Assembly: GCA_001179505.1 (NCBI GenBank)
Contig: CDMY01000568.1
Span: 1 to 50,515, forward strand
Direction of reading: 5' to 3'
DNA from: Vitrella brassicaformis CCMP3155
Lineage: Eukaryota > Protista > Chromerida
DNA length: 50,515 nucleotides
A program made the translations under genes and the position numbers. Under the pieces are notes generated by a model. The model worked only from the letters and a program-made list of their open reading frames with translations, was not told where the DNA came from and ran no database searches. Below are positions 33,601 to 39,500 of the stretch, piece by piece; within the stretch, counting starts at the first letter, position 1; every line of letters starts with the position of its first letter.

Positions 33601-33648
33601 TTTTTGGATTGTGACGAGGGGATGGATGGGGGGGATGGGGGGCTATAA
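24791..33648 (+). CDS. SRA(YDG)-preSET-SET-postSET histone methyltransferase-like protein (SUVH-like, paralog F) with a very long low-complexity C-terminus
   Basis: SRA-like motifs PGAMFWNRHHLRLCGVH, VSVVLEGDNVTDDRGDRFVY and GCRYDG; preSET DLALGRDKHKIAVYN...CQCSRECENR; SET KGWELRA..ICEY|AG, VDSSIVGNVSRFM|SHSCVPN and RDIEPGQPITIDY; postSET KCHCGEELCRGYIG. Exons splice in frame to TAA at 33648. Confidence 0.85.
29749..32484 (+). repeat. Intragenic direct duplication of about 180-195 bp (29749-29943 and 32305-32484) in gene F
   Basis: Both copies encode AQDATQ..QEAPADGAAA..QPAHHPVLPCASAAGGPPA.AVTSEAAVEPAA.ATASA. Confidence 0.9.
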
Positions 33649-34914
33649 GTAAGGGAGTGGACCGGTGCTGTTGCCGAGTGACTGAGTTGAGTGAAACTCA
33701 CTCGAGCCGGTTCGTTCGTCTGTGTCCGTCGGTGGAGGCTGGCGCGAGAGTGAGAGAGTGAGGGAGCGAGAGAGAGGGCCGCCCCTTTTTCTGCCGATCG
33801 GTTGATGTATGGTCGGCGGGCACACATGTGATCTGCGGGCGGAAGGAAACGTGTTTGCGTGGATGGAATTGTTGATGCGTGTTGGTTCATGTGCCTTCCT
33901 TGGAGCTTTATCGGCTGAGTAGCGAACGTGCTATGCGTGTCGTTCGTGCTGTGCGTGTTATGTTATGGTGGTGCTGCGTGTCTGTCTGTCATGGTTTGTC
34001 GTGTGTCAGTCATGATGCCGCTACTCCGATGCCGCTGTGTTGCTGCTGGAGTATCCATCCACTCGCCCGCCCTTTCCCTGTAAGTGTTCTCGACGTGCGG
34101 CTCGTGAGGGCCGCAGACCGACAGACAGATCGACTGACTGACTCGTGCAATGTCACGTGGTGGATGGATGGATGGATGACGGTGTCTTGCATCCATATCA
34201 ATCAATGTCATAACATGCGTGTGATGTGAACCATGGCACCCTCGGCAGTCTTCACACGAGGGAAATCATCTCTTCCTTCACCCCTTGGTCTCGCTCAGTG
34301 ACATCCATCGGTTTGCTATCCTTCTCTCGTCTTGCTCTGGGACGTGTGCAGCGCCCTCAGGCAAGGGCCACCGACTGCCTCTTCACAGCAGGCGATCGGT
34401 GCACATTGCTAGAGCGCGCTGCATTACATCCCAGTTCTAAGATGAGTGGGAACACGGGCAAGCAGTCGAAAGCACTCAGACATGTCCATGAGTGCCGTGT
34501 CAACGAGCCGTGTGGCGGGTTCCGTTCAGTCTGTCCATGAGACCACTGTCAACCAGGCTGTAGCTGTCCAACTTTCCACGGGTGACGGCTCCAACCTGGC
34601 AGGCAGTCGCGAAACGGACAGACCGAGCTCATACCACACCAATCCAGCCCCGATACTCGGCAGCTGATACATCGTCAGGCGCGCAGTGGTTCATTCGCTC
34701 CATCCATCCATCCATCCATTCATCCAACCAGCAGCAGCAGCAGCAAAAGCACCCCTCCCTCCCTCGGTCCCTCTTTCGTGTACCTCTCTGATGCTGCTGG
34801 GCCAGCCAATGGAAAACACCCATGTTTGCACACACAGAAAAACTGGCCGCTGAAGGGGGGAGGGTCATGCAGCTCTTAGCTCTAGGATCCTCCTAGCCCC
34901 GCCCACTCACTCAC

Positions 34915-35573
34915 TCACGCCTTTTGTCTGGTGACGTGAGTGTACCATGGCTCGTCGTGCGGCATGACCCCCAGGTTTATCGCCATGATCTCCTCCTCTG
35001 TCAGCGGCTTGGACTTGTAATTGCTCGGCAAATCGCTCCAGTCACTATACCTGATCCAGTTGACACGCACACGCACACACCACAGAACGGCCGGTTTCCG
35101 TTGTGTCCTCTACCTTCTGTGTGTTCCTTCCTTGCTCACCTTTCCACATCGATCCCCGGCTTGCTGCCCCTCGTCGATGCCGCTGCTGACGATGCCCCGC
35201 TGGCCGCCTCCCTCGGTGAGGGGGCCGGTGTGGGCCTCCCCTCTCCCCTCATCCCACCGGCCTTGCGGTCAGGGAACCGAATCAGCGGCGTATAGCGCCG
35301 TGCTGCATTATGTGTCGTTTGCTCGGGGGTGCTGCTGGTGTTGGTGTTGTGTCGCGGTGGTGCTTGTTGTGCGGATGTAGAGGATGAGGCGGGTGGTTGT
35401 GCCTTGTCTGCTGGTTGGTCGGCGAGTTGGTCGGCGAAGGATGTGTCGATAGTGCACAGATCACCGCCGATGTACACGGTGCCGCCTGCATGCACCACAA
35501 ACAAGGCCACGAAAGAGATGATATGTGTGCTGGCAAAACGGATATTAGAGAGCGTGCGGCCATGTGTGTGGCG

Positions 35574-35608
<35 letters not shown>

Positions 35609-36212
35609 GTCCAACTAACTCACCGACTTCGGCCGCGTGGCCGGTGATCTTGCCCGAGGCCTCGGCGTGAATGTCAACAGACACCTGCACACACACACAC
35701 ATATGAATAGTGAAGGCACGCAATGCACACGACACCACCGCATGAGTCTGCCCTTCCGTAATTACCTTGTCGGTGTCGATGACGCAGATAACTTCATCCT
35801 CCTTGACCAGAGTGCCCACGTCCTTCTTCCACTCGGCCACCGTGCCCTCGGTGATGGAGTCACCCATATTCGGCACCTGACAAACAACACACACACACAG
35901 ACAGAGAACACAGACACAGACACAACCAAACGACACCAATCACATCCATCTCTCCTTGCCCCACCCGACAGCCCAGTCCATAGGCTCGTGCTGGCTCACC
36001 TTCATCAGCACAGATGACTCGGCGGCCTCACTGAAATGCCGGCAAAACACCCGCTGCCCACTCGCCACCTCTGACGCCGCCCTCTGGAGAGCTCCTGAGT
36101 GAGGTGTGTGTGTCCGTCTCGTCAGCAGGGCGGTGCTGAGGCGCAGCATGCTCGATGACACGGGCCACTTTGTGCACACGAGGGCGCCAGAAAGTCGACG
36201 GAAGGCCAGCAT
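34915..36212 (-). CDS. Mitochondrial lipoyl-domain + KGD4/MRPS36-like protein (2-oxoglutarate dehydrogenase adaptor); exons 36212-36000, 35876-35766, 35684-35624, 35485-35140, 35050-~34915
   Basis: Arg/Ser-rich presequence; lipoyl domain [21 protein letters not shown]...IDTDK|VSVDI; then [11 protein letters not shown] and [22 protein letters not shown], which match the two conserved KGD4/MRPS36 motifs. There is no acyltransferase domain. The exact 3' end is uncertain. Confidence 0.8.
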
Positions 36213-36553
36213 GAGCCCAACACGCCGTTTGTTGGTCTTTGACAGATGCGGCACTCAACAGGGGGCGCTCCCAACAGCTGTCTGTTCGCTTCACTCCTCG
36301 CCTTTAAAGCTCGCAGCTTCAGATCGCGCCAAAGGAGCGTCGCCTCGAAAAGGGGCAGGGATTAGTGTGGCTAAGGCTTAGGAAGGTCAGTGAGTCATTC
36401 AGCTCTCGACCGGATTGATGCACTCATCTCCATGTAAGGTTGACATCCATCGTTCCATGCAGTGTCGGACAGACTTCTCTCTCTTCTTTGCGCGGTGACC
36501 TTGGTGGGCAGCACATCGACAGAAAGCTGATGCCGACATACAGGCCATCAAGT

Positions 36554-39500
36554 TCATCCCTGCAGAGCAGAAAGAGACGTCCGAGCGAAAGAAACACGTT
36601 CAAGACACTGTGTGCCGTCCACTGCCCTGCCCTTGGTGCACATCCATCCGATGCACCCTCCCATGCCGCTGCAGGCTGATCTATACACACCACACCACAC
36701 CAACCGTGAGAAACCGTCAACACATACACACATGCACTTGTAGCTAGCTACCCGACAGCAGCACCAGCACCAGCAGCTGCCATCTCCTGTTTCTCCTGCT
36801 TCTTTTGCTTTTTGGCGGCGGCGGCCTTCCCCCGGGTGGTGCCCCTGTTGCCGCTCTTGCCCTCTAGGTAACACGCCACGATCTTCTTGACATACGTGGC
36901 GCACTTGCCCTGACAATGAGCGGACAGACACAAACACAATGCCGGTCTGTCTAGTCATTTTGTGACACCGCACCTGCAGGTCTGTCGGGTCAGTCCACTT
37001 GGACGGCACAGGCGATGCGTCAGCCAGCAACGAGATGGTCGCATCTGTTAAGATACATACAACACATCCATCGGATGGATGGCCCTCCCTCTCTGTGTGA
37101 GCATCCATTGGTACCCGTGCTGGAAGTGCCGCCGCCGCTGTGTCCTGTGGCCATGGTGTCGATGCGGTAGACGTGCAGGTGATGCGTGACGTGGCTGAAC
37201 ACATGAGTCACCTCACCCACCTGAATGCCTCGACAACACGTGGCACACAGCCATGGATCGGGAGAGACACAGAGGTTTGGCTTATCTGCCCGGCTCTCAT
37301 CTCGGTACCTTGGGAGCAGCAGACGAGTCGTCACACGCAACGCCCATCTCCTCTAAGGCCGCCCGGAGCTTCTGCGGCACAACACGCACACACAGACACA
37401 GGGAGAGAGAGAGGGAGAGAGAGGGATATGCGACACACGCCGACACACACCTCCCACACACATGGAACTCCAGTCAGACGGGCAGGCCATGTGTGTGTCG
37501 TGGGTATGGCAGAGAGTCAGAGCGATAAGGGATGAGTGTTTGTGTGTATCCTCACTGGACACTCAGAGAGGTTCTTACAAGACAAAGCGAATCATCACGC
37601 TGCCTGCCATGACCACCCCAACCACACACCACCTCACTGACCTGTACACACTCCTGGTCGCTCACAGCGGCATCCCCACTGCCCTTCTTCCGCTTTTTGT
37701 CACCCTTCTTCCCCTTGCCGCTGCTGCTGTTCTCTATCAGCACGCTGGGCGGCTCCCACTGGTTGGCCAGCAGCCCCTTGCTGGCCCGCTGCCGCACCAG
37801 GATGTGCCCGTCTGACGGCCGCTCGACGATCGCCACGGCGTAGGTCTCCTCCTTGCGGGGAGCCGTGCTCTTCTGAAAGAGGGAGGGATGAGCACATAGT
37901 GTGCACATGGGTCATGGATGGGATGCGCACACGCGTGTTTGTGTTTCTTGTGCTTCTCACTCACCGGCAATGGGTACTCGCCAGCTGAGACAGGGCCGTC
38001 CACACGCTGCGATCCAGACAGACAGACAGACAGACAGGACGAAAAAGATAGATCGACCATACGGGGACGGAGCTCTCCATAGCTCTCTGGCTGAGGTCGT
38101 GCTTACGGCTGGGTCGCACACGTCACATTCGCTGGGGTTGTGTCCCTTCCGGCGCACTGTGCGGTCCCTCACCTCCCGCTGTACTCGACAGTGCGCCGAT
38201 ACTGACACAACACAGACACACAGACACATGCATGTGAGAGCCGTGTTTGGTGAATGAAGGTTTTCTGACTTCCTACTCGGACAGACGGAGCATGCAGGGT
38301 TCTTGGGCGTGCAGACGGTCGCCCCAAGCTCCATCAGAGCCTGCACACACAGGACAGACACACACACATCACAACCAACCGTATCTATACCTCCTGCAAT
38401 CACCCAGAAGCGCACCTGATTGAGATCCCCTGGAGATTGCACTTCGTCCCCCTCTTGGCTTTTGACCAGCTCCCGCGCCACATTGGTGCTCGCCGCCAGC
38501 AGGTTCCTCGCGCTCGCAGGGGCGGCGTAGGCAGCCAGTCGGCTCGCCACGCGCACCACATTGCCGTCAACCGCCGGAGTGGGCACCGAGTAGCTGCACA
38601 AAACGGTTGAAACGTATGTGGCGTGTACTGCATGTGGTTGGTGTCTGTCTGTTGGCTCGTAGGCTTACGCGATGGATAAAATGGCGCCTGCGGTGTATGG
38701 GCCGATGCCGGGAATGGAGCGGAGGGACTTCTCGTCACTCGGGATCACACCACCATAATCCTGTACACCGCGGACACAACAGCACAGCACACCACCACCA
38801 AGTGGACACAGACATGCACACACGTACCCTTCCCTGTGTTATGGATCTCGCTCACCCTCATGACCTTCTTGGCCCCCTCGAGCAGGTTCTTGGCCCTGCT
38901 GTAGTACCCCAGTCCCGCCCACACCTCATTCACTTCCTCCAGCGTGGCACCACTCAGCGCCTCGGCGGTCGGCCAGCGCCCCATCCACTTGAGCCAGTAC
39001 TCAATCACCGTGGCCACCTGCGTCTGCTGCAGCATCACCTCAGACACCCATACGCCGTACGCCGACACGCTCGCAGAGACGTTGGTTGGCGCAGAGGGAG
39101 AGGGAGAGGAGTTCGGGGGAGGGGCAGGGTCAGGGGCGGGTGGTGCCTGCCTCTGCTTGAAGAACTGTTGGATGGTGGGCTGGCTCTTGTCGGACTTCTG
39201 GCGGGTGACGGTGCGATGGCCATAGGGAGGCGGGTCACCCCTGAATGCAGTTAACGACAGCGAGAGGATGCAGCAGCAGCGCACGGCGCTTTCATCTATT
39301 GTCTCTGTCTGTCTTTTATGTGAGCATATACCTACCTCCACGGCAGGTGCCTTCGGTTCGCCCTGAACCAGTCCAGCAAGCCTTTCCGAATGCCCTCCCT
39401 GTCCGCCCTACCCAGGTGGTGGTAGCCACCTCTCGTCGACTGATCTCCATCTTCATCGCCAACGTCTTGATGCTGCTGGTGTCGCTGGTGCTGCTGCTGC

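Follow-up and report, generated by a model that had tools for sequence, protein, structure and literature searches.

A lipoyl domain fused to a KGD4/MRPS36 tail in Vitrella brassicaformis and distant relatives: a candidate E3BP-like subunit in the 2-oxoglutarate dehydrogenase complex

KGD4/MRPS36 has been known as a subunit of OGDHc, the 2-oxoglutarate dehydrogenase complex, only since 2014, as a small adaptor for which no origin has been put forward. Pull-downs in yeast captured E3 (Lpd1) with the N-terminal part of Kgd4 and the Kgd1-Kgd2 core with its C-terminal part (PMC4214781), and in cattle cross-linking and modelling placed the N-terminus of MRPS36 on the E3 dimer, at the site that a peripheral-subunit-binding domain (PSBD) uses, and its C-terminus on the E2o trimer (PMC9974300). 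Homologues were reported 'in fungi and animals' (PMC4214781) and later work described the protein as restricted to eukaryotes (PMC9974300). That study also sets the adaptor of OGDHc, a small protein, against the inactive, lipoyl-carrying E2 paralogue of the pyruvate dehydrogenase complex (PDC), known as E3BP or protein X, as two different strategies. Here we describe a gene of the chromerid Vitrella brassicaformis CCMP3155, located in a DNA stretch of 50,515 nucleotides (contig CDMY01000568.1, positions 1 to 50,515; hereafter the window), whose predicted product combines an E2o-type lipoyl domain with a tail carrying both KGD4/MRPS36 motifs.

The gene comprises five exons on the minus strand, and the ends of its coding sequence (CDS, 36212-34915) coincide exactly with the interval 34915-36212 singled out in an earlier reading of the DNA letters, referred to below as the original prediction. 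All introns have GT..AG borders. The joined CDS of 867 nt encodes 288 aa, and its translation agrees at every residue with a public protein of the same strain (P0001), whose database label is no more than 'unnamed protein product / lipoyl-binding domain-containing protein'. The reading frame contains a TGA 15 codons 5' of the start ATG. The N-terminal segment encoded by exon 1 contains 9 basic residues, with the first acidic residue at position 48, and is presequence-like, which by its composition would suit mitochondrial targeting. It is followed by a match to Pfam Biotin_lipoyl (aa 70-141, E 2.8e-15) with a DTDK motif, in which K108 is the candidate lipoyl-lysine. The best single-domain match among solved structures was the E2o lipoyl domain of Dictyostelium (9njt, 69.7 bits). 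The top NCBIfam model was sucB (TIGR01347), matched over its first 119 of 404 positions only (77.7 bits, cut-off 378.65), and the N-terminal part of sucB was also the best NCBIfam model for the Naegleria and Fragilariopsis relatives introduced below. In an AlphaFold model, for which 31 relatives were used, the pLDDT means of blocks of ten residues exceed 93 throughout aa 71-140, values beyond aa 150 are low, and the predicted fold is a lipoyl/biotinyl barrel-sandwich that matches lipoyl domains. By these sequence comparisons the domain is intact and of E2o type. Neither the acyltransferase domain PF00198 nor the PSBD (PF02817) was matched by Pfam in the Vitrella protein or in any of the 31 relatives.

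The remainder of the protein can, from its sequence relationships, be assigned to the KGD4/MRPS36 module. Taken alone, aa 150-288 scored 23.1 bits (E 2.4e-4) against PF10937 (Kgd4-YMR31, curated cut-off 22 bits), covering profile positions 23-114 of 116. As this score is marginal, the homology was tested a second way, by profile comparison with hhalign: 31 fused tails aligned with ten named opisthokont MRPS36/Kgd4 sequences at 99.5% probability (E 5.9e-23) over 83 columns, both motifs included. The original prediction had named this module from its C-terminal motifs, an assignment that both scores uphold. PF10937 recognises 12 of the 31 fused relatives at E <= 0.01 (best 1.4e-6), and eight of ten tested short forms, including all four that carry a name, exceed its cut-off with 26-51 bits, the MRPS36 proteins of cuttlefish, Globodera and Basidiobolus reaching 46-51 bits. 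When a profile of the 31 tails was run against 1.84 billion representative proteins, it returned 1010 matches at E <= 1e-3 and 132 at E <= 1e-10; the best 150 of the 1010 include named short MRPS36/ribosomal protein S36 entries (cuttlefish, Globodera, Basidiobolus) as well as zygomycete proteins. The putative E3-binding motif (aa 194-203) aligns with VPLIKFPTRK of cuttlefish MRPS36 and VPLIKFLGPR of Basidiobolus, and the C-terminal motif (aa 251-271) aligns with LPAKYHRKPLSQEEIEFIERGG. AlphaFold predicts a short helix at aa 262-270 (pLDDT 78-86) and disorder for the rest of the tail. No KGD4/MRPS36 chain was found among the solved structures, searched with the tail as sequence and as profile, and no usable match was returned by a protein Atlas search with one tail alone. 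A word search with the Vitrella tail alone (aa 185-288) returned only the Vitrella protein itself, so relatives were reached through the lipoyl domain and then by profile.

Two further observations concern the tail. The linker of an Aureococcus E2o gave a tblastn hit (E 0.027) to the TPLIRF region, which on inspection proved to be low-complexity Arg/Pro sequence with no common motif. The cuttlefish 'MRPS36' (P0184, 152 aa) contains the C-terminal KGD4 motif twice, about 60 residues apart, and a 92-aa protein of the same species and the same 90%-identity cluster contains it once; the doubling probably stems from a faulty gene model or from duplication at the locus.

The architecture listed in the original prediction, namely a presequence, an E2o-type lipoyl domain with DTDK, two motifs and a second linker, is borne out in full by the gene model and Pfam. 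A first linker, described there as Ala/Pro, is likewise present, with Ser, Thr and Gln abundant in it beside Ala and Pro, and the C-terminal motif, placed there directly before the stop, is separated from it by 17 further residues (aa 272-288).

Compared with KGD4/MRPS36, the fourth subunit ('E4') of the OGDHc of fungi and animals, the Vitrella protein has both motifs in the same order and with similar spacing (P-L-I-[KR]-F, then LP..Y.R..L..EE.E.I..GG). However, KGD4/MRPS36 is a protein of about 85-125 aa made up of a presequence, two motifs and a linker, with no domain ahead of the motifs and with GG and a few residues at its end, whereas of the 288 residues of the Vitrella protein about 75 form an E2o-type lipoyl domain and about 50 a linker, both ahead of the motifs, and the protein ends in GV plus 17 residues. 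E3BP (protein X, PDHX) offers a second parallel, as a non-catalytic protein with a lipoyl domain on a flexible linker and with E3-binding and core-binding elements, in a complex whose E2 does not hold E3. It binds E3 by means of a folded PSBD (PF02817) and joins the core by means of an acyltransferase domain that is degenerate (PF00198), whereas in the Vitrella protein short linear motifs would serve for both; judged by its domains, the latter is an analogue of E3BP and not a member of that family. The likeness to E2o (DLST, SucB) is restricted to the E2o-type lipoyl domain with its lipoyl-lysine in DTDK: the catalytic 2-oxoacid_dh domain and its DHRxxDG motif are absent. In the protein Atlas, every member of a bacterial family of about 200 aa has both Biotin_lipoyl and E3_binding (PSBD), whereas an acyltransferase domain is absent. 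As a lead only, the structural match being weak (TM 0.32/0.45), this family may be the counterpart in prokaryotes of a lipoyl-plus-E3-binding protein that lacks a catalytic core.

Proteins of the same design are found well beyond Vitrella. A search with a metagenomic member (P0003) gathered dozens of proteins of 190-330 aa, each with a lipoyl domain, an R-x-P-x-I-x-F-x-x-G-K-R motif and a C-terminal motif resembling P..YGRP.LS..E.EAIESGGA. In the alignment of 31 sequences T106, D107, K108, V109, F199 and G271 are invariant and I197 and E264 nearly so. Both motifs are conserved from Naegleria to diatoms, and the [TS]DK lipoyl motif is retained in 99 of 99 distinct full-length fused members. The fused form was found in Alveolata (Vitrella), stramenopiles (Fragilariopsis, Tribonema and, as a partial sequence, Heterosigma), Rhizaria (Spongospora, Paulinella, Leptophrys), green algae (Cymbomonas) and Heterolobosea within Discoba (Naegleria lovaniensis, Willaertia magna). 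The original prediction had allowed that similar fusions might already have been reported from other eukaryotes. The protein Atlas adds a cluster of 154 members, mainly diatoms, with Biotin_lipoyl in 100% and Kgd4-YMR31 in 20% of its members, and one of 60 members, mainly Chlorophyta; a haptophyte cluster of lower score is a weak lead. Automatic Pfam annotation already tags some members with both domains. The names given to relatives (P0003, P0031, P0089, P0173, P0201) in their sources conflict with each other and include '2-oxoglutarate dehydrogenase E2 component', 'pyruvate/2-oxoglutarate dehydrogenase complex E2', 'biotin carboxyl carrier protein', 'lipoamide acyltransferase component of BCKDH' (the branched-chain 2-oxoacid dehydrogenase) and 'single hybrid motif-containing protein'. 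The public names as E2, BCKDH acyltransferase or biotin carrier are wrong for the fused proteins, and the ready mis-annotation as E2 that had been anticipated is therefore real.

How the tail is distributed with and without a lipoyl domain was followed in the best 150 of the 1010 tail-profile matches. A complete lipoyl domain is present in 43 of these and an N-terminally cut one in 20, and at least 26 more start with the last lipoyl strand; the cut and last-strand sequences come from fused genes broken up in gene calling. A script detected no lipoyl trace in up to 61, of which about 10 keep a last-strand remnant when judged by eye and roughly 35-40 look truly stand-alone. Every named stand-alone form found is from an animal or a fungus. 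Two unnamed metagenomic stand-alone KGD4 genes lie in compact genomes of microbial eukaryotes (L010:897-1211 and L012:1537-1815), in the first case with the upstream neighbour ending 56 nt away. As there is no room for an upstream lipoyl exon in these two genomes, unfused forms are real outside the annotated animals and fungi.

Transcript evidence for the Vitrella gene was taken from Logan assembled contigs of four public runs (X1, X2, X6 and X4), the RNA label of the runs being a guess. Spliced contigs were found in three of them (X1, X2, X6); every intron is absent from these, and the joints, given in Table 1 together with the other features of the gene, fit the gene model. The X4 contig, in contrast, runs unbroken through intron 4 and is DNA-like. 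It is the exact removal of canonical introns in three runs, set against the unspliced fourth, that makes the contigs informative. A single X6 contig covers 36293 to 34778, and an X1 contig leads from exon 2 through exon 5 and then, unspliced, to 34345. Because the latter passes the TGA without splicing, the stop is retained in the mRNA and the 3' untranslated region (UTR) measures at least 570 nt. This unspliced continuation beyond the stop also means that no acyltransferase domain is part of the protein. In a tblastn search for acyltransferase sequence, ten E2 proteins matched only the lipoyl exons in the whole 50.5-kb window (E ~1e-10). The absence of an E2 catalytic core, as stated in the original prediction, thus stands on both the retained stop and the search.

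Table 1. Positions in the window of the Vitrella lipoyl-KGD4 gene and of its transcribed and coding parts
Feature	Positions	Strand	Evidence or remark
5' UTR, minimum extent	36213..36293	-	spliced X6 contig extends to 36293; no ATG in 36293-36213
Exon 1: start codon and presequence-like N-terminus, aa 1-71 (aa 70-71 are the first lipoyl residues)	36000..36212	-	gene model; joint 35873>35997 in three runs
Exon 2: first half of lipoyl domain, aa 72-108 (codon of K108, 35766-35768, is the last codon)	35766..35876	-	Pfam Biotin_lipoyl
Exon 3: middle of lipoyl domain, aa 109-129	35624..35684	-	gene model; joint 35486>35764 with 58 letters between its sides, X1 and X6 contigs
Exon 4: end of lipoyl domain (aa 142 at 35445), first linker, putative E3-binding motif, second linker	35140..35485	-	gene model
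Putative KGD4 N-terminal (E3-binding) motif, aa 194-203	35262..35291	-	conservation in the family and alignment to MRPS36; E3 role from PMC4214781, PMC9974300
Exon 5: KGD4 C-terminal motif, 17-residue extension, TGA stop (34915-34917)	34915..35050	-	joint 35048>35138 in three runs
Putative KGD4 C-terminal (E1o-E2o core-binding) motif, aa 251-271	34969..35031	-	Pfam Kgd4-YMR31 profile positions 85-114 of 116
3' UTR, minimum extent	34345..34914	-	X1 contig unbroken from 35048 to 34345, with a repeat-masked gap of matching length

Several details of the locus bear on how it is read by machine. A consensus-like donor GTGAGT overlaps the stop codon (34908-34918, minus strand; GC followed by GTGAGTGAGT), and its use would leave the frame open; it is unused in the spliced contigs. 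Introns 2 and 3 are stop-free and in frame with exons 2-4, which results in a mechanical open reading frame of 267 aa at 35136-35939 on the minus strand, and a prokaryote-style gene caller would there give a false protein with inserts encoded by CA repeats within the lipoyl domain. Microsatellites, made up of (TGGA)n or its complement, of (CA)n or of (GA)n, are located in the 3' flank and the introns or nearby (34161-34178, 34699-34726, 35579-35611, 35884-35907, 36685-36705), and lead to depth spikes, loose ends and false long-range joints in contig placement. About 100 nt upstream of the 5' end of the gene lies a neighbouring transcribed unit of the minus strand (36398-37000) with a 64-nt intron (joint 36908>36973, CT..AC on the plus strand). 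The next gene downstream is on the opposite strand and ends near 33648.

Eukaryotic E2o is without a PSBD (PMC9974300), and our list of relatives agrees with this, the eukaryote-type E2o matches being without Pfam E3_binding and the bacterial-type matches with it. Given the Kgd4 motifs in its tail, we infer that the Vitrella protein would tether E3 to a core whose E2o lacks the PSBD. By analogy, and with a probability that we put at roughly three in four, it is a fourth OGDH subunit that resembles E3BP and brings a swinging arm of its own, a reading already offered in the original prediction and now strengthened by the published roles of the two motifs in Kgd4 and MRPS36 (PMC4214781, PMC9974300). 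In such a subunit the motif at aa 194-203 would bind the E3 dimer and the C-terminal helix with the pattern LP..Y....L.EEE.......G the E1o-E2o core, as is the case in yeast Kgd4 and bovine MRPS36, and K108 would be lipoylated, as in the E3BP of the pyruvate dehydrogenase complex. Placed beside the tethered E3 on a disordered linker of about 50 residues, the lipoyl domain would form an additional swinging arm. E1o may charge it by reductive succinylation, after which it would unload at E2o and E3 would reoxidise it. Alternatively, it may relay reducing equivalents from the lipoyl domains of E2o to E3.

A number of points weigh against this assignment. The whole protein scores 21.1 bits on PF10937, slightly below the cut-off. 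At the C-terminal motif Vitrella has GV where 90% of the relatives have GG, and together with the 17-residue extension this could mean that binding to the core differs. Lipoylation, mitochondrial location and binding to E3 and E2o are predictions from sequence and analogy. The lipoyl domain of protein X is dispensable in yeast PDC, and an extra arm need not matter catalytically. A separate full-length Vitrella E2o was not found in the literature searched, the Vitrella genome itself was not searched, and Vitrella may also have a stand-alone KGD4.

The alternative that survives best keeps the tail as a tether of E3 to OGDHc and gives the lipoyl domain another task. Its role could be structural or regulatory, with docking on E1o or E3 or sensing of the redox state, or it could serve cofactor assembly as a lipoyl carrier or relay, like the H-protein in lipoyl-relay pathways. 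Animal and fungal OGDHc runs with a lipoyl-less adaptor (PMC4214781, PMC9974300), so that the domain is not mechanistically required, and truly stand-alone forms also occur in the microbial eukaryotes with compact genomes described above. Against this, little or no variation is seen in any member at the lipoyl lysine and the E2o-like surface motif (MGDSITEGT ... TDKV). Such strict conservation speaks for a domain that the lipoylation machinery and E1o still recognise, more than for a purely structural part; we consider a task other than that of an arm unlikely.

Less probable still is service to another lipoate-dependent complex, be it the BCKDH that replaces mitochondrial pyruvate dehydrogenase in myzozoans, the 2-oxoadipate dehydrogenase or a plastid complex. 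The mitochondrial pyruvate dehydrogenase was indeed lost in myzozoans (PMC7789003), and the BCKDH acyltransferase name is borne by a Tribonema relative, as an automatic UniProt name, and by the diatom cluster of the Atlas. However, the lipoyl domain fits E2o (sucB) models best in three distant members, the tail corresponds to KGD4, which in yeast attaches to the Kgd1-Kgd2 core by its C-terminal part (PMC4214781), and E2b and E2p retain a PSBD of their own and need no such adaptor (PMC9974300); moreover, the N-terminus, by reading of its sequence, is unlike a signal peptide for a complex plastid. The idea that this is a DLST (E2o) gene which is truncated, mis-modelled or in decay and has no separate function is barely credible and is already contradicted, for although E2 proteins match the lipoyl part only and several sources name the relatives E2 components, the gene yields a correctly spliced mRNA in which the reading frame is closed, its tail shows both conservation and homology to KGD4, 99 distinct full-length relatives share the design in distant lineages, and no remnant of a catalytic domain exists within the 50.5-kb window.

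Returning to the E3BP-like subunit, the fusion might represent the ancestral eukaryotic state. On this scheme a duplicate of E2o would have given rise to an E3BP-like fourth subunit of OGDHc that kept its lipoyl arm while the rest was reduced to two linear motifs, and MRPS36/Kgd4 of animals and fungi would be the remnant after loss of the lipoyl domain. We hold this idea tentatively, at a little short of even odds. An ancient fusion followed by domain loss is attractive because carriers of the fused form are spread over Discoba, Chloroplastida and each of the three branches of the group of stramenopiles, Alveolata and Rhizaria (SAR), whereas all named unfused forms come from opisthokonts. Such a distribution speaks for the ancestral state suggested in the original prediction, but the trees of lipoyl domains and tails do not settle it. 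In a tree of 94 lipoyl domains (77 columns) the fused and E2o domains interleave without support. A tree of 132 tails (85 columns) has no clear resolution either; in it the named opisthokont forms are not rejected as a clade (p-AU 0.85), but this is no proof of one. With regard to a single or repeated origin of the fusion, these sequence trees neither show nor exclude a single one.

In the literature that we searched, mostly outside subscription journals, the papers in which lipoyl is mentioned along with Kgd4 or MRPS36 deal with animals or fungi or are general reviews, and a fusion is described in none of them; nothing relevant was found for KGD4/MRPS36 with protists or algae or for the automatic protein name. 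The lipoyl-KGD4 family is intermediate between the adaptor of OGDHc and the E3BP of PDC and would link these two solutions, and it points to a testable origin of KGD4. If the fusion is indeed ancestral, most eukaryotic lineages carry an overlooked sixth class of lipoylated protein. An extra lipoylated protein is predicted in diatoms, green algae, Rhizaria, chromerids and heteroloboseans, and perhaps in haptophytes, and would bear on the reading of anti-lipoate blots, on lipoate-scavenging studies and on models of the tricarboxylic acid cycle in these organisms.

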